Source: Glycera tridactyla
Taxonomy: Eukaryota
DNA length: 64,000 nt
Reading direction: 5' to 3'
NCBI GenBank assembly: GCA_965644265.1
Contig: OZ286466.1
Location: forward strand, 41,540,001-41,604,000
Shown: positions 3,081-64,000 of the stretch, one piece after another
Layout of the letters: every line of letters begins with the position of its first letter
Numbering within the stretch: position 1 is the first letter of the stretch
Program-made: the position numbers and the translations under genes
Notes under the pieces: generated by a model
The model's input: the letters and a program-made list of their open reading frames with translations, nothing else
Database searches by the model: none
What the model was told of the DNA's origin: nothing

Positions 3081-5923
3081 ATAAGATAAGATAAGATAAG
3101 ATAAGTAACTTTTATTTTTCATTCACGGATAACAAAGTAAGATATACAGAGATACCAGATTTTCAACATCCCGTGACAAGTATAATTCAACATGATGAAC
3201 ATAAGATTAAAGCCTGCACATGGAGAAAGAGGAAAATGGTGTTAACCATATGAAAGATATGCTGAAATCTTTTCAGACAAGCTACTCGATAAAATAGTAC
3301 AGCTATTGATCGAAAAATGGAGTCAATTACATGGCTACATAATAACTAGAGTAAAACAGGTGATAGATGACACATAGCATTCCGTAACTATGAACCACTG
3401 CTTTCATAGTTGCTAGATAAAAAATATAGCAAATATTGCCTTCCTTAAGAATGTCAAATGTGAAATTGAAATACGACTAGTGCAATCAACGTGTTTGAAG
3501 CCATTTGAATAAATGATCTTTGAAAGCTTCTTTGGTAAGAGTTTGTAATTCTTTAATTTCAGGAGGAATCTTATTCCAGCTTTTTGGGCCCATGTATGAA
3601 AAGCTTTTTTGAGATTGACAGGTCCGGAAAAGTGGCAATTCAAAATCACCTCTACCAGCTCCCCTTGTCCCATGATCATGGGCAGACTGTAAAGGGGTCA
3701 GAAGTGATTGTAAATACATGGGTGCTTTCCCGTTGATGCACTTGTGCATCAGTTGTAATAGATGCATTTCTCTGGCTTCTGAAAGACGTAAAATGCTCAA
3801 ATCGGCATGGAGTGCATCAGTGTCAGACCATCGATTTCTAAGAAGGATACATCTTAGTCCTTTATTTTGTTGTACTTGTAGTAGATACGCATCCCTGCCA
3901 CTTATAGAATGTAGTACTGAATCACAGTACTGAAACAGTGGAACAATGAGCGCTTTGTACAATTTGAGTGCTGATTTCAAGCTGATGAACTCCCTTGCTT
4001 TTGATAGGAGAAAAAGCCTCTGGCTAATCTTTCTTGAGATGTATTCAATGTGGGGGCTAAATGACAGCAACGGGTCAAGTATGACACCCAGATACTTGAA
4101 ACTCTCAACCCTTTCAATAATCTGACCAGCAATGGATACTGTTGGAAATAGACGTACTGAGAGCGAATATCTGGTTCCAAAAATCATCACTTTTGTTTTT
4201 GACACATTCAGGAACAGTTTGTTTGTATTCAACCATTTCTCTATGTGGCAGAGATCGTTTTGAAGGTTCCTCATGAGGACCTCCGGATCACTTTCATTGC
4301 AATAGATCGCTGTATCATCTGCATATAACGCACTATCAAAGGTCGTGAGAATCTGGGTGATGTCATTGATGTAGATAATGAACAATAGAGGTCCAAGAGT
4401 TGACCCCTGGGGGACATCACAGGTGACTAGTTTCTCATCAGATAGAGTGCCATTGATTTGTGTTCTTTGCATCCGGTCAGATGAATAGGATCTGAACCAG
4501 TGTAATTCAACATCAGTTATACAGAGTTTTTTCCAATTTGCTGAAAAGCCGGGCATGGTCTACGGTATCAAACGCTTTCTTAAAATCTAAGAAAGCAACT
4601 GCAGTGTTGAGACCTGTGTCAACTTGTCTTAGAATTTTATCTGTCAGATGGACTAGTGCCGTTTCGGTGGAGAATCCTGGACGAAAGCCTGATTGTGAAT
4701 CATTCAGAATATTATGAATACGAAGGAATTTGTATAACTGATTATGAACGATTTTTTCCACGAATTTAGACATGAAAGGAAGAATTGAAATAGGGCGATA
4801 GTTAGACGGATTGCTTCGATCTCCATCCTTGAACAAAGGTGTCACCTGTGATGTCTTCCATGAACCTGGAACAATACCGTCACGAAGGGAAGAACAGAGC
4901 ATATCATGTAATAACGGTGCTAAAATGTCTGCCCCATCAATGAGAAATCTGGCATAAATTCCCAGAAAGCCAGTCGACTTTCCTACCTTCATACTTGCTA
5001 ACAATGATTGGATGTCTGAGAGAGAAGGCTGGTCAAACTTAAAATTCTCTCTACCACCAGATAAGACTGGCTCAGTATCGAGAACCGGTCCAGAGATATC
5101 TTTGCTTAGTTTGACACCAATTTCTGTGTTGAAGTCATTGAACATATTCGCCATTTCGAGCGGGTTGGAGCTTCCTCCGAGGTCAATGATATGCGTTGAC
5201 TTCTGTGCATTCGATAAGAATTGTGAGAAAATTTTCCATGTTTGTTTAGGATTCCTCTCATTGGCTTCCAGATTTGATAAGAAATAAGATTTTTTTCAAG
5301 ATTTTTGCAGTATGGTTTTTGATATTTCTGAGAGCATGAGCCGCAAGTATATCATCTGGTAATAATGATGCACGGGCCTTTGATTGGGCATCTTTGAAGT
5401 CATGTATGATGGAGATATAATCCTCTGTCAACCAGGGAACATTATCAGTTCTAATGTGCATCAATTTGTAGGGTGTAACAAGATCACAAACTTGTCCTAA
5501 GACCTCCAGGAAAAGATTAAAAGTGTCTTGCAAGTTATCAGTGGCATGAAATAAACTCAATAATCTCGCTTGGAGGACCGATCTGTATCTATCCTTTGTG
5601 TAACTTTTGAAAGTTCTTGCAAAGACTTCTTTCTTTTCCTTGCAGGGTTTGCCAGATTTTCTGATGGTAAGAATCAGGTCATGGTCACTCAAACCTGAAG
5701 ATATGACCATCGAGGCACGATACAGATCAGACCTATTCACAAAAATTAAGTCCAATAAAGAACTCCTGATCAGTGAGATTCTGGTTGGTCTTGTTACGAG
5801 CTGTTTTAGACTCTGTGATCGTTCCAGATTTTTGAGTAGAAATCTATTGGGACTATTCACCAGATAGTCGATGTTGACATCTCCAAGGACTATCAAAACG
5901 ATGCTGCAAACGGAATCGGACAA
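3081..5923 (-). mobile_element. 5'-truncated non-LTR retrotransposon, L2/CR1 group
   Basis: APE endonuclease C-terminal motifs (LGDVNID, SDHDLI); RT motifs (NYRPISILP, QSGFRPGFST, FLDFKKAFDTVDH, PQGSTLGPLLF, YADDT, KYLGV); 3' UTR ending AATAAA then (CTTAT)5 tail at 3081-3105. Confidence 0.9.
3486..5923 (-). pseudogene. LINE ORF2 (APE + reverse transcriptase), broken by two frameshifts
   Basis: Three consecutive ORF pieces 5258-5923, 4513-5154 and 3486-4556 continue one another after frame changes near 5290 and 4530. Confidence 0.85.
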
Positions 5924-20578: not shown

Positions 20579-23500
20579 TATTTGGCATCTTTGTTTTTGG
20601 TGGTATCAGTATATTCATTTCGGATCGTCATCCCCTACTGCCCTTCGTCTTTGCCCAGTGCCAACTTATTCTCTTGTGAGGGCCTCTCTTTTTAAGAATG
20701 GCTCTGCCAGGCTTTATGCAGGTGATCGCACAGAAGCAATGGCAGCAGCAGGCCAAAAAAATGTGTGTATCCAGTGTTGGCTCACAAGAAAATAGTCCCC
20801 TCATGAATGCTGTCAATTAGAAACCTTATGTCAGTTGAGAGATGATGTTTGAGGCATGAATGGATATAGATGTATCCCACAGTTTTCCTGGATGGGATAT
20901 TTGCCATGAAAGAGATGCTATATGAGTGCAATGACTTGAGGTTTGCACCATATTCATCCTCCAACAGAGGTGTGAAGAGTCATGCTGCTGCTGATGGGAG
21001 ACATTATCATAAAATAGCTATGGTGACATACATTAACAGAACTTTCATCATATCCCTCGAACTGTTACATAAGTGAATACAGTATGTGATACAGAATGAA
21101 GACCATCACATCATGAGCAAGCAGAATCAATGTCAAGCAGATCAGAAAGTATGCTAATGAAAGCTGGCCCAAAATATGAAATGTTAGTTTAGTTCATCCA
21201 GTCCTCACTGTGTCACTTTCTAAAAACAGTCAAAAGATGGGTCTGTCAAAACAACAACACCTCTGAAGTATTCACCCAACCATATGCAGTCTCCCTGCCA
21301 TCATATTCTGGACCTCACCATAGATGTTGAGCTGGAGATAGGGGGAGAGAGTCTGGCCCATACCAGCTAACTAACCAGACATCAGAGGCTATGTGTGGAT
21401 CTACCAGTTGACCTAGATGTACTGATAGTCCCCTCCCCCCTCCCCCTCCCATTCACACAAACCCTGCTCTCTCATCCAGCAGCCTGGCCAACCCATAGAA
21501 ACATTCAAACTGTTGAGTCCATCCTATTGACTCTCTTAGCACCAACATAATATTGAAACTAAGGAAGAGAGTACAGTGAAATCATGTGTATTCCCATCAT
21601 GTTTGGTCCCTCTGTATGCATTATACAAGTAGTTATAGAGAGACCCCCTGACAATAGACCTCCTCTGACGGACACCGCTTTCTCAGGGCAGCTACTTTAT
21701 TTGACCCTAAATGTTACCAAAATGAAGTCTCTCAATAGAGGTCGTCTCTCGTAGGAGGCATATTTGACTATCTCGAATAGAGAAGCTGCACAGAAAAAGC
21801 GGTCTCCAATCAGAGGTGGCCTATGGTCGGAGGTTTCACTGTAGTCCCTCATCATATATTTCACTGCAGTATTTATCTGAAGTGATATTGAAGATAGATA
21901 GCCTTTCCATCAAGGGTCTTCAGTAAATACATGCATTTTCAGTGATTGAAAAAGCATAGCTATGCCATTTTTACCATACCAATTATAGTGGAACCTCTGA
22001 CCTGCCCTAAACGTCACCAAAAAGTAGTTTCTCAAAAGAAGTGGTCTCTCATCAAGTATATTTGACTATGTCACACAAAAAAGCTGCTTAGCAGAGATGG
22101 TCTCCTTTTGGATGTGGTCTCTCATCTGATGTTTTCCTGTAGTTGCGATTGTATTCTCAGAAAAGAACAGAATGAAACCATCATTTGTATTCAAGATACA
22201 ATATGGTCTCAGATGCTGAGAGATTTAGGGACCTTACAGGCTATGTGGGTTACCATTCAATCAAATTGTATCATTTATGTATTTACTGCTAAAAATTATG
22301 TTTTGGACTACTTTAATATTCAGTCATGCAATGATATTGCTGCCATTCTTTTGGGGCCTACAGGCCTAGTTTTCTATCAAGTCCACACTTCTTATAAGAG
22401 ATGCCAATAAAAATACAGTCTAACCTGTCCATAAAGGCTGCTTCGGTCACATACTTTATAGGCAGGTGGTCTCTATAGAGATCATTTACTGTTGAAAACA
22501 CGTGATGAGTATTTGTGTGCAATGGTTGGTTCTAACCAATAAAACAATCAAAATGAAAATGAGATACAATGGTTGTGATTATTAGCTGAAACCCCAATTA
22601 GATTGACCCAACTAGCTAATTACTGAGTTGTCAACAAGAAATTCATCAAAAAAACCTTACCAAGTTTTGTGGGCGAAGCTTACATATTCAGTCATTCTCA
22701 AAAATTTGTAACAATTCCAGAGGAGCAAAACAAGAAAAACAAAGTTTTGGCAAACTATTCCAAACTGCTTTATTATGATTACAGACTACCTGAAGTTCTC
22801 AAATCCAAGTTTTCACCCACTAAATACTTTTCTTTCATGTGATATCATCAGTGACACGCAACCATATGGATTTGTCAAGAAACAGTTATGAGATGTCACC
22901 AAGTGAAGATGAATTGAGTGTAGTTGGTAATTATAGGTATAATCAGACACATAGCTTCCATTTTAATGCAGCAAACAATATTTCTGAATGGAATGATCAT
23001 ATAGTGGTGTCATATATTGATCGATACCCTGTTGGCCATATGGTTACAGAATTCGGTTTCCAGCTAAAATTGACACACTATATTTTCAACCTTCTTTCGT
23101 TTTACATAGATCACTTTTGCGTGGGCACGAATAAAAAAAAGGTAGTTTACATGTGAGCTGGATACATCAACAACAAGCACAACAAAAATCATTCAGCAAA
23201 ATGTAACGGTATCATGTCCACAGGCAATTTAGAAACATGACAAATTCGTTACGGAGGTTAGAAAGAAATGAACGAGATTCATAGTATAATCTCATGTGGA
23301 GAATAGTGTTAAATTTCTTGTTACTTTGAAGATGGGTGAAAAAATGGTTGCATCTATATATTGTCAAACTCTCCACAGCTTTATGCATCAACTATAGTCC
23401 ACTTGCTCTCTCCACTAATCAAGGTCATTAATTTTCATTGAAAATCTTTTGTAGGAGTCAGATTTTCATGTAATATCACCCCTGGCTCAGATTAGGGGAT

Positions 23501-23874
23501 ATGTCTCACATCTACTCCCCTCTCTCATATCTGTGAATAGACAAATCATGATATTGGCATTATCTGAGATGCTTCCTGAAACAAAAACAAAATCAGTACT
23601 TTGTTACGGAGGTTAGACAGATTGCATACAACTTGCATAGTAGCTTGATGACAACAGCATATGCTGCCTTCAATCCAATTATGTGGATAATCCTTCAATA
23701 GATACTTCTTTCAGAGTAGGACCAGACAATAATCTCATGGACTATGGTCACTGGAAGAGAAATTTTCTGACCATTTTCAAACAGAGATAATGTATTTTTT
23801 TCTCACTGAAAACATAACGGAAATGTCTGTTCATGGTTGGACATAGACAGAAAAGTAGCAGTGTCCACTACACT

Positions 23875-26388
23875 TTATTTGAAGGCCGTGAATGTGTCAT
23901 CAATCAATTTAAGTGTGTCTTTAGGGATGGAAAAGCATTTCTTGCCCTTGCCCACCTGTATGGGAGTCTCAATAATCAGAAGGAGATCATCATAGCCCAC
24001 CCATATTTCATCCTTACGAGCTGGCCACTTGAAAGTCCCACTCTTGCCCGATCTTGTCAAGAATTTGATTAACACTTCTACCTCATTTTTATCTTTCACC
24101 TGTCCCACATACCAGCTATCACCATACACAACTGCAACCCAATCCAAGATATTGGGACTTGTGGCAAGATGCTGTTGCACTGCAATATTCTCAGTGCCTT
24201 GATTCAGATCATCTTGTGCTGACGTCACCGGAGAATTAATTCTATCAGTGGACTTGCACTGGCTTGAAGTTGGTCCAATCTTGGAGGCTTTGGCAATGGA
24301 GTGTTTGATCCACCCATCACAACTTGATGTGGATACATCCTTCAGGCAGTCTGGACAATTACAGCTCATGTCTCGCACAGCCATCACCATGTCAGGAAGT
24401 GGTACAACTGCATGAAGAGTCATTGTCCCTGGGAGAGGTTGAACTTCAGGTTTGCCAGCAAGAATGACAGCAGAATTGTCATAATCACTCTGGGAGTAAT
24501 GAAAAAATTTGACTTTGCTGGCTGACATATTGCTGCAAAAAGTGTGAAACTCAGAGGCATCCTGAATGCTGCACTTGCCCTGTCTGACTGCCATGTCTGC
24601 CGCCCTTTTAACACTGGCACCAAGACCATCACATGGGCCTTTACCATGTCCACTTTCAAGATAATTCCATCGTGCTTGTACACCAAAGTCCTGTTCGTGC
24701 CCTTGCAGGATATTGAAGATGGTTTTATTCCGATACTGGCTGGTGGGAGAGTCTGTCAAATAGTGCACTGTTTCAAGTGATGGACATTCCTGTTTGAGGA
24801 GTGGCATGAGCTTTTGAATTATGGAATAAACTGCTGTGGCATTGTGGTTAAGAACTTCTGATATGGCTACATAGCTCTGAAATGTTTTCTCACTAGTGGG
24901 AGAGAAGTAGGCAACCATAGTATGGAGTGAAACCATCGCAGCATTCCAGTATGCTGATTGAACCTCTTCTGCAGAAGAACAAGTATAATTTTCGGCGAAA
25001 TCCATCCAGACTAAGATTTCATTCTCGGGCAGATTTTCTCGAAGTCTTCTCACTTCCTTGTATTGTGTTTGCACCCTGATGACATGCTGACGGAAATCAC
25101 AGATCTCTTTCATGAGAAGATCAATAAAGTCAGCCTTAGGGATGGTTTGCTCAATTTCCTTGAAACGTGACTTGTCACCATCTTTCACTTTTCGCCAAAC
25201 TTTGAATGTCACATCGGATTCAAGATGATTCTGTAAATCACTGGTTAGTGTTGTATCATCAGGATATTCTTTGATGAATACATCTGGATTTTTTGAACAC
25301 TGAACACCATAATTCCTCAGGCTACGCAGTTTGAGCCCCATGTTCTGATGATAAGTACATAAACAGGTTTTTCTTGATGCAAAGTTTGCTAGCATAATGT
25401 GGGCAGGCCTCATCCGGCAGAATACACTGCGTGACATCTTGATATCAGGGTATTCAGCGCGAAATTTCTCATGAAGATTATGCAAATAGTCCAAAAGCAC
25501 CCGTTTCTGCTTGTGCTCATTATCAACAACCTTGGTATCATTTTTACCTGGAAGTACTGTACAATTATCTTCTCGCTCAAGAAATGAGTGAACTTTGTCA
25601 CGAACCATTTGCTTGCTGGCGTCAGTTTTCCTCGCGGTTCTCATCCTTGATATTTTTTGCCGTGTGATTTGTAATTTCTCTCCAAGTGATGATATACATC
25701 GATACTTCCTCAACACACCATTTGCTAATTTCTTTTTGATCACAGCCTCATTCTTTTTCTTATACACTTTCAGGTTTCCTCGAAGATCAGAAAGTAGACT
25801 ATTAGCCAAGATCAGCTGCTTACGAATTTTGGGATGCTTACGTGGAGACAGACCCTCATCTTGCAATTCTTTTTGCGCTTTTGAGCGTGGAGTCATTGTC
25901 TGCATTGTGATAGTTTCACAACTTTCTGAAGTAGATGGCTGCACTTCGCGGGTCTCCTGGCTCTTTCGTTTCCTAATGAGCTGTTTCTCTGTTTTCCAAT
26001 TCTTACGTTTCAGCCTTTCATTCTCTTCGGACAAACCATGAATTGTTTTATAAGCTCTCCGAAGTGCGCGCTTATGTGATTTGCGAACTCCCACACTCTT
26101 ACTGATTCCAGGCAGTTTCACCGTAACTCGCGTCGAAGGACTACACACTGAAGAGGAAAAGGACTGCTGCTCTTCAAGGGACATGGATAGCTTTCCCTTA
26201 TTGTAGAATGTCTTTGCTTTTTTCCTATTCTCTGCTCTCCGCCTCTTCAACTGGGCTGGATTCAATTCAGCAACTGGAACATAAGTAGCCCTCTTGCGTC
26301 TTCTTTCTTTCTCCTTGTGACCTGATGGATCAGCCCTCTTCTGCTTTTCCCTCCATTTTCGCTGCCTCTCTGCATTTGTCAGGGCCAT
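23875..26388 (-). CDS. DDD transposase, Sola2-like (837 aa from MALTNAERQ; ORF open from 26475)
   Basis: D(82)D(40)D triad in WMDFAENY / YLTDSPTSQYRNK / SGHGKGPCDG; upstream CLCTYHQN motif; basic N-terminus; subgroup assigned from recalled motifs. Confidence 0.8.
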   Translation of the reverse strand: MALTNAERQRKWREKQKRADPSGHKEKERRRKRATYVPVAELNPAQLKRRRAENRKKAKTFYNKGKLSMSLEEQQSFSSSVCSPSTRVTVKLPGISKSVGVRKSHKRALRRAYKTIHGLSEENERLKRKNWKTEKQLIRKRKSQETREVQPSTSESCETITMQTMTPRSKAQKELQDEGLSPRKHPKIRKQLILANSLLSDLRGNLKVYKKKNEAVIKKKLANGVLRKYRCISSLGEKLQITRQKISRMRTARKTDASKQMVRDKVHSFLEREDNCTVLPGKNDTKVVDNEHKQKRVLLDYLHNLHEKFRAEYPDIKMSRSVFCRMRPAHIMLANFASRKTCLCTYHQNMGLKLRSLRNYGVQCSKNPDVFIKEYPDDTTLTSDLQNHLESDVTFKVWRKVKDGDKSRFKEIEQTIPKADFIDLLMKEICDFRQHVIRVQTQYKEVRRLRENLPENEILVWMDFAENYTCSSAEEVQSAYWNAAMVSLHTMVAYFSPTSEKTFQSYVAISEVLNHNATAVYSIIQKLMPLLKQECPSLETVHYLTDSPTSQYRNKTIFNILQGHEQDFGVQARWNYLESGHGKGPCDGLGASVKRAADMAVRQGKCSIQDASEFHTFCSNMSASKVKFFHYSQSDYDNSAVILAGKPEVQPLPGTMTLHAVVPLPDMVMAVRDMSCNCPDCLKDVSTSSCDGWIKHSIAKASKIGPTSSQCKSTDRINSPVTSAQDDLNQGTENIAVQQHLATSPNILDWVAVVYGDSWYVGQVKDKNEVEVLIKFLTRSGKSGTFKWPARKDEIWVGYDDLLLIIETPIQVGKGKKCFSIPKDTLKLIDDTFTAFK

Positions 26389-26389
26389 C

Positions 26390-26880
26390 CTGCAAAGAGA
26401 CACAAGTACAAGATGTTGCTGCTTCCCAGAATGAATTATCAGTGCATTCTCATACTGGCTCCATACATAATCCATTCACGGAAAGAAACTCACACTCCTG
26501 ATTGCTAGGCAAATGAGTATGGTCCATTGTCAGAATAGAATGAATCATTATCAGGTTCATAATGATAGAAAATCAGGTGGTGGATAAGTACAGAGAACTT
26601 GATGGACAAATGGTTGATAAAGTATAAAAAAACACTCAATATTGCAGTAAAAATCAAATTCTAGCAATCCTCAGTAAGCTATAAATCTTGACTAGTGAGT
26701 ATGACAGATTGATTCAAAAAGAAGACCATCGAATTGTTCTTCAAATCCTGAATTGACATCAGTGGCATTCTATCTAACCTCCATAACATACCTGTTTGCT
26801 ACCACTGATTGGTGTTAAAACACCCATTGAAGTGGGGAATACTACATTTTACCAAATGAAATGCATAGATAAACACTCAC
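26390..26880 (-). other. Putative 5'-UTR intron of the transposase gene
   Basis: Minus-strand donor AAAAG|GTGAGT at 26880 and acceptor TCTCTTTGCAG|G one base before ATG at 26388. Confidence 0.55.
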
Positions 26881-27120
26881 CTTTTCAATGAGCTGGTCTC
26901 AGCTTGGTATTTTGGGAAATTCACTCCTAGAATTGCTATTTTCCACAAGTTTGTGGCATGAGTTGTTGACTCCTTTGTTTGGGCCACTAGTCCATGCTGA
27001 CCACTGACCAGCACTGCCCAGATATATGCAGGATCCCTCAACCACATGTTTTGATGATCCCCTTGTCATAATATACCCCAGTAACCAGGGGGTGCCCTGG
27101 AGAGTGCAGACAAGTATCCT

Positions 27121-27150
27121 GTTACGGAGGTTAGGTGTTACGGAGGTTAG
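27121..27150 (+). promoter_or_regulatory. Tandem pair of the 14-bp subterminal motif GTTACGGAGGTTAG
   Basis: Exact copies at 23248, 23603, 27121, 27137, 63723, 63740; variants at 26774 (inverted), 27293, 27482, 62526, 63896. Confidence 0.5.
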
Positions 27151-29459
27151 GGACCAGCCAATCTAGTGGCCATATCATAGCCTGGAAAGAAGTCCATACC
27201 ACCCATAAGCTACCATGCTTGAGTGGGTATGGACCACTATATCATATTAGAAAACCATGGTTCCAACTTCATTTTTTCTATGAATGGAGGCCGTTACGGA
27301 AGTTAGGTCCTTATTTGTCCCCTCTTCATTTTTGAAGTTCGTTCCATCATTATTCAGCCATCGTCAACACTGGAATCCAGAAATGCTGTTTTATCTTTAC
27401 TATGGTTGTGAATGAATAAAAAGGTGATATCTTATCATCTAATGATGAAACCTACTACATTCTGTAGCCAGCCAAAAAACTGTTACGGAGGTTATAGGAA
27501 TTTCACGGACAATCATTATTGAGCTGGCATCTTGAAATCCAAAGGATTATCAATGAGAAAGCATGATTTTCTGTAACTTTCATATATTACCAACATAGAT
27601 TTAGGAGTTTTTCCATCCTGTGATATAATCTTCCTAGCAAAATGCAACCCTGAATTAGGAGAAATGCTCTGCAGACATGGCTTTTTGGGCAATCTGACGA
27701 TATTCAAGCTCACAAAACACATGGATCATATTCATGGATCACCATGAAATTTGGCAGAAATTCTCTTAACAAACTAAGGATCATTCCAAAATAATTTTTG
27801 TATCTGTGAGTGATGGGATTTTTTCACAAATTAGTGAGCAACCCTGAAGACACTAGATTTCCCAAATTGTTACAAATTTTTGAGAATGACTGATTACCAA
27901 TCAAACAATTAGAATCAAAATCCATTGAGAATTGAGGGAGGGGATATGATTTTAGTGATTTTTGCATAATCACCCAATTAGCCTAATCACCAAGTCATTG
28001 ATGAGAATTTCACACAAAATGTGACCGAGTTCTGTCCAATAAAATAATAAGAATCAAAATCCATCGAGAAGTGAGGGAGGAGATGCAATGTCTGCGAATT
28101 GTGGATGACAATGGACAACGGACGATGGACAATGGCAGATGGACGCGGCGTGATGGCATAAGCTCATCAGCCTTCGGCCATATGAGCTAATGAAGTGTAG
28201 GGTCGACAGATATGCCAGGTTGAAAATATACCAGGATATATGGTAACTATGGCATACTTCGGAGAACTGGAGTAACGTTCATCTATAACCAATGTGTAGC
28301 AGATGAGATCAATGTACAACTCCATCCAAATCAACTTGTTACAATCCAATCACAAGAGAGTGGCGACCTACTCATCTCCTAATCTAATTAAATCAATACG
28401 CTAAGTGTCTTAAAGATTCACAACATCGACAGTGATTTCCCCTTCTTTTTTGGGTGGGAATGGCGGTTGAGGGCAAGCCAATCAAAGATACAGTTTTGCA
28501 CCACACCCCCAAAAAAAAACACTTATCAAAATGTGAAGTAAAAAAATTACCTCATTCGGATTGTAGGTGAGCCCAAACCCCATTTTCATCTTTTTTTGTG
28601 TCCCAGCCATTGTTCTTTTTCATCCAATGTCTATTAACTGAAGTTTAGCCTTGACACATTCAAAGATGGGCCAAAGACCAAGAATTTTGCAATCCCACAA
28701 CTGCCAACATATGGAGACAACCTAAATGGTGGACATTTTGAATCACTTGCATCTTTCCTGCTCAATCTCTACACATTCTCGTCTGATTATAATGATCTAA
28801 ATCCCAAAATAATGTGCTTAATATGCTTTTCTGCCATTTGCAAGGCTCAATGTCTGCCATTATAACATGAAATCCCTTAATTAATCACATCTCTAGATAG
28901 AGAACTGGGAAATGGCCTAAATGAACCGAGAAATTAATGATGGATTTGACCGGCATCTTTATTCATGATGCCTTCCAGAGAAAACCACGAAAAATATGGG
29001 CTCTAAAAATCAGGATTATGTTCCATCACCGAGGAACAATGTGGGGGAAATGTAAGATTTATCACACTGGTACAGTATAATCACACCATGTAATGGTCCA
29101 TTCTTGTTAATTAAATATCTCATCACAGGAAATGGACTCCAATAAAGCCTAATGGACTGGTTTTAGGTTAGTCTTACCGAGAAATGGAAACACTGAATGG
29201 AAGTAGGTCATGCTAGTTGCTATGGTTGTGTATGAAAGCCATGGTAACTGGAATCACATGCTCCGTTTCTAGGTGCATCTGAGCTTTTGGTGAGATGGAT
29301 GTTCTTGATGAGTCAAGCTTGGTATGTGTGAGCACACACACTCATCATGCTCATGACCTACATATTACAGTATTCACACCTTCCATCCCCCACATATCTA
29401 TGATCAGATCAATTCATGAATACTAATGAAGCACGTACACATTCATACATACATGGCGG

Positions 29460-60788: not shown

Positions 60789-61754
60789 TATATCAATCTT
60801 GTACTTTCTGCATGTAAAAAACTCCCAAACATATGGAACTACAGTTATATGCATTTTTCCTTTATCAACTGTTTGTTCATACAAGCATTGAATAATTGCT
60901 CAACAAACCCATGAAGAAGATCATACCATGGGAACTGAATATTGGTGTCCAACTTCCAGATATGTTTGCCACTTCATCATTCACTGAGTATTCTGTAATT
61001 CAATGACAATGAATGATAATTTCCAGGAGAAATCTAACATCTTTACTACCTTGGTGGTACAAAAAATGTAATGAATATTGACAATTCCCATCACTAATCC
61101 ATTCATCCAAAGTTTGGCTCTTGGTAGCATAGCAACGAAAAATATCATGATAGACGGTAGATAGGCCTGGTATCAACATCCTACCGATTACCATAACAGT
61201 GGGGACATGCATCACCCTAGAAATGCATACAGATTTTATTTGGAGATTTGATGTGCTATGAATATAAATGCGGCCAGTGCTTTCCGATCAGGGCCATCAT
61301 ATTCCTCAGGAGATTCAGCCGACAACTTAGATGCCCAGAAAAATCAGAATATGGAATATCCAACATTCACTCCATGTCTTGCAGCCCCCCCCCCCCCCCC
61401 CCCTTTTACAAAGATACAAATCAGGGTTCCCTCTCTGTATTAGCGTTTTAGCTAAAGGTAATGAATAAGGGAAATGCTAAAAATTATTTGATTTGCTATA
61501 ATGATTTGCCAGAGTCATTTACAATCTTGATGGCCAAAGATGGCGGGGCTGGTTTTTTGTTGATGAACATTCACCTAAATTCATGTGTTTTGGCAGAAAA
61601 ACGCAGCAGAAAGAATGGCATAAGAATGCCATCATTTTTTCATTTGGGTGAGATGATTCAGTGAAATGCTTTCTGATCTCTTCAAAGCGTTTTCTGAATT
61701 GTGAAAAATATCTCCATTTTGCTAAAATCATCCACTAAGAGGTTTTTCATTGTA

Positions 61755-64000
61755 CAGTCATTCTCAAAGAATTGTAACAATTCCAGTAGAGCAAAACATG
61801 AAAAATGAAGTTCTAACAAACACTTTCAAACTACTTTATTTTCACTGTAGACAACCTGAAGCTCCCGAATCCAAGTTTTTGTCCACTAAATATTATTCGT
61901 TCTCTGTATATCAAGGGTGACATACAACCCTGTCAACTGAAAAAAATAACAATTTTGCTGTGTACAGAGATGAAGATGACTACTGTGTAATTGATATTGT
62001 TGATGCAATCTAGCACTCAGCTTTCATTTTGATGCAGCAAACAAGTTTTCAAAGTGAAAGGCCATATGATAGTGCCATATATGGACTAGTGCTCTGCTAT
62101 TCATACAATAATGGCAATCGGCATTTGGGTGAAATTAGGAGCTTATAATTTCAACTTTCTACTATTTTCTATAAATCACATATGTCTTGAGAAGAATACC
62201 ACAAAAGTAGTTCACAGTTGAGCTGAACATGTGTACAGGGAGCACATCAAAATTCATCCACAAAAACCCATGGATATGGATATTCTTCACAATTTTTCAC
62301 AACTTCTGTCAACAACTATAGTCCTCTATATCTCACAGTAGACAATTTAGATTTTTCATTGAAATTCAGCTTATGAGTTCAGCATTTCAAACCCATTTGA
62401 GTATAGAATGTGCTGAGGGAATATATTATGCATTGACTTATACCCTCCATATCTCCCTGTAGAGATCAATCATGGAAACAACATTATTTCAAAGGTTCAA
62501 AGGAGAAAATCATAATCAGTACCTTGTCACGGAAGTTAGACAAATCACGAATACAGTTTGATTAGGAATTGGAGAAAAATGCATTAGGAAGATCCTCGAG
62601 CCTATGTTCACATCATGACATTTATTTGAGATGACTGTTATCTTGAACCACTTCTCAAAAGATTTTTTTTTTTTTTTTGGGGGGGGGGACTTTCTGTCAG
62701 TTCACTGTGAGAGAATGTAACTAGTAACTGTCATTCTATGGAAAGTGCATTTTTGTACTGGTATTCAGTGTGTAGAAAACACCCTGTTTTGCCTATGACT
62801 TCACTCTACCAAGGAAATCCCTGGCAAATAACAGTAATAAGTGAGAGAATACCAGGTTCTCTATCTACAATTGTTTAGGACATTGAATGCACCATCAATC
62901 TGAATAAGCCTGTTTTTCGGATTGGCAGATCATCTTTCAAAGTTCACACACAAATGGGTTCACTAAAAAGGGAGATGATCTCCCAACCTGAGAAAGACAG
63001 GCTTATTCAGATTGATGATGCATACAAATGTCCTCAAACAAGTATGAATAGTGAACACTGGTATTCCATCACTTATTATTGTTATATGCAAGGGACACCA
63101 GAACTATCGGGGGATATCTCAAATGTTTTACAATAATCAAAAATAATATAAATCATCATAGCATGCCTATATCTCATCCTTACTGATGAATTCTAACCTC
63201 AGACAATCTTACCAGCAGTTCTGAATCATATTTGCCTTTCACCTGCCCTATATGCTTTGCATTTCCATGCCTTACATTGAAGCAATCTGTTTTGCCATAT
63301 CTGAAGTAGGAGCTATGCCAATGACCTATCCCTGGCTCAATATTGACATGATCTTGTGTTGTGCATACCTATCAAAACCTGACATGGTTGCTTTCTTCAG
63401 GTAGTCTGATCAAGGAAGAGTCAGTCAAAAAGTGATTTATTATCAATATGAGCATTACTGTTTGGAAGGTGGCATCAGCTTCAGATATATGTTACAAATG
63501 GTTGTGGTATTGAAGTTCTGATATGGTCATGAAGCTCTGGAATGATTTCTGTCATACAGGCGGAAAGTGGGCAAGTAGATTATGGGTTAATTGACATTGC
63601 AGCATCCAAATATGCTAATTTAACCTTTTCTGCAGAAAATCAAGTGTAATTCTCCTCAAAATCCATGCCCTGGGTGCAATTTAGCAGCAAGAGGTTCAAC
63701 CAGAAGTGAAGACCGGTATCCTGTTACGGAGGTTAGAATGTTACGGAGGTTAGGGAACAGCCAATCTAGTGGCCACATCATAGGCTTGAAAAGAGTCTAT
63801 ACCATACATAAGCTACCATTCTGGAGTGGGTATGGACCACCATATGATATTAGAGAATCATGGTTCCAACCTCACTCTTTCCATGTATGAAAGCCGTTAC
63901 CGAGGTTAGGTCCTTATTTGTTCCCTCTTCATTTTTCAAGTTCGGTTCATCAGTATTCAGTCGTTGTTACCATTGGAATCCAGAAATGTTGTTCTATCTT
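61755..64000 (-). mobile_element. Diverged non-autonomous relative of the 22689-27892 transposon (runs off window end)
   Basis: TIR CAGTCATTCTCAAAGAATTGTAACAATT (26/28 match); 61755-62750 resembles 22689-23830; 63715-64000 resembles 27115-27400; no transposase ORF. Confidence 0.8.
62889..63021. repeat. Imperfect long hairpin (47/49-bp arms, 37-nt loop)
   Basis: Perfect 21-bp core: CATCAATCTGAATAAGCCTGT (62893-62913) pairs with 62997-63017. Confidence 0.85.

Follow-up and report, generated by a model that had tools for sequence, protein, structure and literature searches.

The 64,000-nucleotide stretch of Glycera tridactyla DNA analyzed here, referred to as the window, contains at positions 22689-27892 a DNA transposon that raises a question about how its transposase cuts the target. 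The element resembles the Sola superfamily, which is defined by a DDD transposase together with a target-site duplication (TSD) of 4 bp (PMC10741241), and it is flanked by a duplication of 3 bp. In the initial annotation of the window, this was taken to indicate a recently active lineage with different end and target chemistry. The question is whether the 3-bp duplication belongs to the lineage or to this one insertion. The data presented here favor, with a probability that we put at about 0.75, the view that this is an autonomous, recently active member of a Sola-like family in which 4-bp duplications are the norm, with the window copy as a 3-bp exception.

The whole element spans 5204 bp and, like its flanking duplications, has no strand assigned; a full-length copy elsewhere in the genome (L036) is 99.6% identical to it. 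It is bounded by perfect 28-bp terminal inverted repeats (TIRs) at 22689-22716 (+ strand) and 27865-27892 (- strand), the right one being the perfect complement of the left, with a sequence that starts with CAGTC and begins CAGTCATTCTC. With up to three mismatches allowed, the window contains three matches to the 28-bp pattern, and 100 shuffles contain none. Immediately outside the TIRs lie the two copies of ATT (22686-22688 and 27893-27895), whereas at 4 bp the left flank reads TATT and the right flank ATTA, so that no 4-bp duplication fits. Between the ends, an uninterrupted open reading frame (ORF) of 866 amino acids plus stop (23875-26475, - strand) encodes the transposase. In these respects, i.e., an intact element, perfect ends starting with CAGTC, ATT on both sides with no fitting 4-bp repeat, and a related element at 61755 that also starts with CAG (as CAGTC, with two mismatches in its TIR), the initial annotation described the locus correctly. 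Its description of the CAG ends as atypical fared less well: these ends were confirmed, and they are conserved between species, but their departure from other Sola elements carries little weight, as Sola termini are very variable (PMC10741241). The element can be described as a Sola-like DNA transposon of the cut-and-paste type, intact and very young.

Within the 2.04-Gb assembly (207 contigs, with the window on the contig here called C18), a protein search found four uninterrupted 866-amino-acid copies of the transposase at 99 to 100% protein identity, located on contigs C18 (the window copy), C34, C13, and C4. A fifth autonomous copy on C42 has 98% protein identity and carries one TGA stop. 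Compared with the window copy, L036 on C4 has changes at 21 of 5204 nucleotides and at six residues, one of them a C373W replacement at a position that is otherwise invariant in the family. The flanks differ between copies, which identifies them as separate insertions; for the window and C34 copies, a shared origin by segmental duplication or flank exchange was rejected, as the similarity of their flanks is at chance level and the halves of their TSDs do not cross-match. The youth proposed for the element is thus borne out by the four intact, nearly identical copies, and from the same identity we infer that the transposase is active now.

The length of the duplication at other insertions answers the question raised above. 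Allowing up to two mismatches, the TIR matches the genome 122 times in forward and 123 times in reverse orientation (about 245 in all), while a reversed control pattern gave no match. About 100 of these 245 matches were listed and about 90 used, giving 46 paired copies, the junctions of which were read. Of these, 35 are flanked by a perfect direct repeat of 4 bp (34 of 45, plus the neighbor at 61755 with TGTA), and four more have a 4-bp repeat with one mismatched base. An exact repeat of only 3 bp was found twice, at the window copy (ATT) and at L055 (AGT), and the remaining five pairs show no recognizable duplication. For the five copies that carry a transposase gene, the TSDs are ATT (window), TAGA, AGCA, TTTT, and, in one case, none. 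The 34 perfect 4-bp sites yielded a loosely palindromic target logo, S-A-Y | W-N-N-W | R-Y-S, in which the base 5' of the TSD is a pyrimidine at all 34 sites (C at 23, T at 11) and the base 3' of it a purine at all 34 (G at 24, A at 10). A 4-bp duplication is also seen in a relative from another assembly, L070, a complete 6132-bp element that has a transposase 40% identical to that of the window element and CAGTCATTCC ends and is flanked by AGCA at either end. The CAGTCATTC ends are common to both elements, and since L070 also has a 4-bp duplication, ends starting with CAGTC and a duplication of this length are conserved features of the clade. Taken together, the 35 perfect duplications among 46 pairs, three of the five autonomous copies, the neighbor, and the relative from the other assembly refute the idea that 3-bp target chemistry characterizes the lineage. 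The initial annotation had itself proposed that TSDs be tabulated over other copies and had named 4-bp duplications there as the outcome that would speak against it, and this is the outcome that we obtained. A 4-bp duplication is the family norm, and the lineage as such has no new target chemistry.

Several features of the data weigh against this reading. The 46 pairs represent only part of the TIR matches in the genome, and most of the TSD table stems from a non-autonomous partner family of the element, with the 4-bp duplication present at three of the five autonomous copies. Furthermore, the copies without a recognizable duplication include that on C34, the ORF of which is 100% identical to that of the window copy (C34:56202009-56207212, junctions L060 and L061, with TACA on the left and CTAT on the right). 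Present activity is likewise deduced from the identity between copies. Lastly, membership in Sola, which we consider probable, was assigned from the DDD transposase, the 4-bp TSD, and the lack of any other superfamily's signature.

The classification of the family depends to a large extent on its transposase. The homologues share a conserved start that aligns with M30 (codon 26386-26388), and translation therefore probably begins at 26388, which would give a protein of 837 amino acids. In an alignment of 23 sequences (the protein and 22 homologues), D492, D575, and D616 are invariant (codons 25000-25002, 24751-24753, and 24628-24630, - strand, all checked), lying in the motifs MDFAEN, TDSPTSQYRN, and GHGKGPCDG, respectively; the uninterrupted D(82)D(40)D transposase noted initially was therefore confirmed. 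A predicted RNase H-like catalytic core occupies residues ~473 to 656 (24508-25059, - strand), as judged from invariant columns, the predicted fold, and structural matches. In an AlphaFold model built from the 23-sequence alignment (mean pLDDT of 74.7, with values of 80 to 96 in the core), the elements of this core are predicted to follow the order β1-β2-β3-α-β4-α-β5-α, with D492 after β1, D575 after β4, and D616 just before the next helix. A Foldseek search of the PDB with this model returned weak matches to RNase H folds. A wider search with VIA-align was clearer; its Z values are used here in support of the fold only and not of function. In this search, the modeled residues ~458 to 656 matched Mos1 best (Z of 9.4, 163 residues aligned, root mean square deviation [rmsd] of 3.9), followed by simian immunodeficiency virus (SIV) integrase (Z of 9.2), Metnase (9.1), prototype foamy virus (PFV) integrase (8.8), IstA (8.5), and Sleeping Beauty (7.7). 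These models support a DDD-type transposase with an RNase H-like core that is closest to Mos1 and retroviral integrase.

Two conserved cysteine clusters flank the core: an invariant C371-x-C373-x2-H376 motif upstream (25348-25365, - strand) and a C705-x-C707-x2-C710 cluster (24346-24363, - strand) in invariant or nearly invariant columns. It is possible that these residues are zinc ligands. At the C terminus, residues ~771 to 855 (23911-24165, - strand) are predicted to form a Tudor/chromo-like β-barrel: VIA-align matched the modeled residues ~771 to 866 to chromo, Tudor, and PWWP barrels, with a Z of 7.7 for the MRG701 chromodomain and of 7.5 for the PHF19 Tudor domain (rmsd of 1.8). Sequence matches to Tudor, chromo, or Agenet domains in the homologues, and to Tudor/Agenet-like domains in a search of PDB sequences, were weak but consistent with such a barrel. 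Such a barrel may serve to read chromatin.

The Sola superfamily is attributed to Bao et al. (2009) and comprises the groups Sola1, Sola2, and Sola3. The window family shares with Sola the DDD transposase, the 4-bp TSD, the TIRs, a size of a few kilobases, the absence of a Pfam model, and an occurrence in molluscs and other invertebrates; Sola1 and Sola2 have been reported in bivalves (PMC10294476). The DDD triad in an RNase H-like fold is indicated by the invariant residues, the predicted fold, and the matches to Mos1 and the integrases (Z of 8 to 9.4), and the 4-bp TSD was found for the family (35 of 46 perfect, four with one mismatch), with the window copy as the 3-bp exception. The family differs from Sola1, the hallmarks of which are an AWWT target and GGAC or GAC ends (PMC3845634), the latter also seen at the starts of bivalve Sola1 consensus sequences. 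The window family has CAGTC ends and an S-A-Y | W-N-N-W | R-Y-S target, and only 2 of the 35 TSDs fit AWWT. For Sola2, the initial annotation gave GRG termini; those here are CAG.

An alternative that we consider unlikely is that the family does not belong to Sola at all and represents a separate superfamily, e.g., one akin to DUF7869, in which the DDD triad and the 4-bp stagger arose by convergence or go back to a very remote ancestor. The departure from the Sola1 hallmarks is in line with this, as is the result that no Pfam model matched the protein, its 22 homologues, or six distant relatives in the genome. With regard to DUF7869 (PF25273), an unannotated eukaryotic family, a language-model search placed DUF7869 clusters nearest to the catalytic part, with scores of 0.90 to 0.93, and an hhalign comparison with two DUF7869 ORFs of the genome gave a probability of 78% and an E value of 1.8e-5 over the block from the second to the third acidic residue, around which both families have the motifs (S/T)D..Q..N and GH....D. 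Against this, the three Sola groups are barely alike, and a member of Sola2 or Sola3 would look the same. Sola RNase H-like domains have also been reported to lack any Pfam match (PMC5751038). The family is moreover so large (23,796 representative clusters at an E value of ≤1e-3) that a transposable element library has probably named it already. As to DUF7869 itself, hmmscan gave no match to PF25273 at an E value of ≤1 in the protein, the 22 homologues, or the six distant relatives, and the DUF7869 loci of the genome are other elements. The two families would, on these sequence comparisons, be remotely related at most. The two intact DUF7869 ORFs lie at L066:3172-6705 (- strand, 1177 amino acids) and L067:797-3547 (+ strand, 916 amino acids), and the second also has a weak match to an OTU-like cysteine protease. 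A literature search found no paper that mentions DUF7869.

Two described superfamilies can be set aside. Tc1/mariner elements (Mos1, Sleeping Beauty, and Metnase) provide the closest solved folds of the core and share with the window protein the short distance from the second to the third acidic residue and the lack of an insertion domain. They differ in that the TSD here is variable and 4 bp long instead of TA, in the N-terminal part, and in the cysteine clusters and C-terminal barrel that the window protein adds; given the lack of a TA duplication and of any DDE_1, DDE_3, or Transposase_1 Pfam match, the likeness is confined to the core fold, and membership was rejected. Zator elements have a 3-bp TSD and a transposase of the TP36 (PF07592) type. 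The window family resembles them in the 3-bp duplication of this one copy and differs in its 4-bp norm. As neither the protein and its homologues nor the genome as a whole has a match to PF07592, Zator is excluded.

Within Sola, it is conceivable that the family forms an undescribed subgroup, characterized by CAGTCATTC ends, the S-A-Y | W-N-N-W | R-Y-S target, GTWACG-type subterminal repeats, and a C-terminal Tudor/chromo-like reader, still jumping and with flexible staggers of 3 or 4 bp. This proposal, close to that of the initial annotation, we regard as doubtful. No homologue that we found carries a Sola name.

We now return to the window copy and to the question of whether its 3-bp duplication is genuine. 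On either side, the element is bordered by parts of a dispersed host repeat, the candidate matches of which number well over a thousand. Copies of this repeat (window 22489-22688 and 27893-28092; 1427 and 2112 first-look candidates) are 72 to 88% identical and found on many contigs, and some matches are offset by ~160 to 330 bp, as would be expected of a partly tandem unit. Empty sites are represented by L068 and L069, two paralogues of the repeat without an interruption: in both, the end of the match to the left flank and the start of the match to the right flank lie exactly three bases apart. As the paralogues align without a gap to the left flank, one ATT, and the right flank, the three bases are truly duplicated at the element. 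The comparison with empty sites that the initial annotation had suggested thus argues for a duplication, and a chance match between unrelated flanks, a caveat raised there, is ruled out by the colinear paralogues. Furthermore, the window site, CAT|ATT|ACC, and the L055 site, GAC|AGT|ACC, keep the rule of a flanking pyrimidine and purine in the 3-bp register only. Because this rule is kept in the 3-bp register and broken in the 4-bp registers, both can be read as true 3-bp events. We therefore read the 3-bp duplication at the window copy as a rare genuine exception; such events account for ~4% of insertions (2 of 46).

A different history of the same site would be a normal 4-bp duplication, TATT or ATTA, from which one junction base was later deleted to leave an apparent ATT. 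Since this scenario and a true 3-bp event predict one and the same empty site, the paralogues agree with both histories, and it is the target logo that speaks against the deletion: the TATT register would place an A where only pyrimidines occur, and the ATTA register would place a C where only purines occur (34 of 34 sites in each case). The second 3-bp case, L055, likewise breaks the rule in either 4-bp register, and the window copy is so young, its ORF being 100% identical to that of another copy, that there was little time for an exact deletion at the junction. We consider such a deletion improbable. That the lineage has switched to 3-bp duplications as a rule, as in Zator, can be dismissed as very improbable, since the two cases of an exact 3-bp duplication in keeping with the target logo stand against 35 perfect 4-bp duplications in 46 copies, including three autonomous copies with 98 to 100% identical protein and the neighbor in the window, and since neither the protein nor the genome has a match to PF07592.

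The preferred reading, a Sola-like family with a 4-bp norm and a 3-bp exception in the window, can be put in mechanistic terms as follows. The DDD transposase, by means of its RNase H-like core, would cut the target with a 4-bp stagger at S-A-Y | W-N-N-W | R-Y-S, and the stagger would give rise to 4-bp duplications, as described for Sola. At the window insertion, the flanking half-sites lie 3 bp apart, i.e., one base closer, and the stagger and the duplication would be 3 bp accordingly. The same or a near-identical transposase would also move the ~100 copies of the 2.85-kb non-coding partner.

This partner family accounts for most of the TIR pairs in the genome, which lie ~2.85 kb apart and belong to about 100 non-coding copies with identical 28-bp ends. 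The partner is ~70% identical to the autonomous element over element positions 1 to 581 and 84% identical over 4415 to 5204, and of the transposase region it retains 260 bp, at 70% identity, with no ORF. A set of 18 partner copies is 95.7% identical to one another and ~2 to 3% from the consensus. Recent deletion derivatives of the element were ruled out, since the subterminal parts are only 70 to 84% identical to it, and the 2.85-kb copies therefore appear to be an older, related non-autonomous family. That the 28 bp are conserved exactly while the rest has diverged suggests that selection keeps the ends recognizable to the present transposase, and presumably this enzyme, or a near-identical one, cross-mobilizes the partner family. 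The non-autonomous relative close to the window element occupies 61751-64000 (+ strand), with the TSD TGTA at 61751-61754 and its TIR from 61755, and it extends 494 bp beyond the end of the window to ~64494, where the right TIR is followed by TGTA. Two further TIR pairs, L035 (C4:33905365-33914729) and L037 (C4:62567933-62577384), lie 9.4 kb apart and hold ORFs of 668 and 993 amino acids that are absent from the 2.85-kb family; L037 has no TSD. Both probably reflect nested insertions of other elements.

The subterminal parts of the window element carry a 14-nucleotide repeat, GTTACGGAGGTTAG, that matches the window 11 times compared with 0.17 times expected. Seven of the matches lie in the element, at 23248-23261 (+ strand), 23603-23616, 26774-26787 (- strand), 27121-27134, 27137-27150, 27293-27306, and 27482-27495, and four lie in the neighbor. 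A similar repeat, GTAACGGAAGTTA, fills the subterminal parts of L070. On this distribution, the GTTACGGAGGTTAG repeats are candidate binding sites of the transposase. At 27120-27151, two of the repeats form a perfect 16-nucleotide tandem pair, two units of TGTTACGGAGGTTAGG, which is located ~650 to 750 bp upstream of the transposase start codons and recurs in the neighbor at 63723-63753.

Beyond this genome, a word-based protein search found 34 to 36 relatives of the transposase, with a best identity of 49%, including proteins filed as hypothetical from the bivalves Pinctada and Mytilus and the sea slug Elysia. An HMM search of 1.84 billion representatives returned 23,796 proteins at an E value of ≤1e-3, of which 3,651 reach ≤1e-30. 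Judged by these homology searches, the transposase family amounts to a very large superfamily that lacks annotation. Relatives of eukaryote type are also encoded on five short contigs (L070 to L074; JBEVXV010000141.1 and four others) that were deposited as part of a 'Sedimenticola sp.' metagenome-assembled genome, and these contigs are most likely animal host DNA that was binned with the bacterium. UniRef places the name 'Vertnin' on two members (P0190 and P0191, from Patella caerulea, in the cluster of P0157) of a limpet cluster within the transposase family. Of these, P0191 is genuinely related (29% identity, E value of 3e-69), and P0190 covers only the non-catalytic, low-complexity middle part. 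A link of the family to vertebrate VRTN is doubtful, and a literature search found no paper connecting VRTN with such a transposase. More than 30 places in the G. tridactyla genome match the catalytic core (residues 420 to 712) at 24 to 25% identity inside stop-free frames of 2200 to 3300 amino acids, e.g., C40:21474149-21475030, C11:49133868-49134749, C13:43415182-43416063, and L081. The core segment of this giant-ORF element gave no Pfam match, and these places look like a high-copy, very young element.

In summary, with the new target chemistry gone, the main reason for interest in this locus has gone as well. What it offers instead is a well-defined and probably still active transposon, with four intact copies, a partner family of about 100 copies, defined ends, a target logo, and candidate binding repeats. 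The ~24,000 representative protein clusters without a Pfam model additionally point to a gap in protein-family annotation. We know of no structure or biochemistry for Sola-like transposition, and the element is possible raw material for its study or for a transposon tool. Since the rare 3-bp events keep the pyrimidine/purine rule, they suggest that the cuts are positioned by recognition of the half-sites and not by a fixed ruler.

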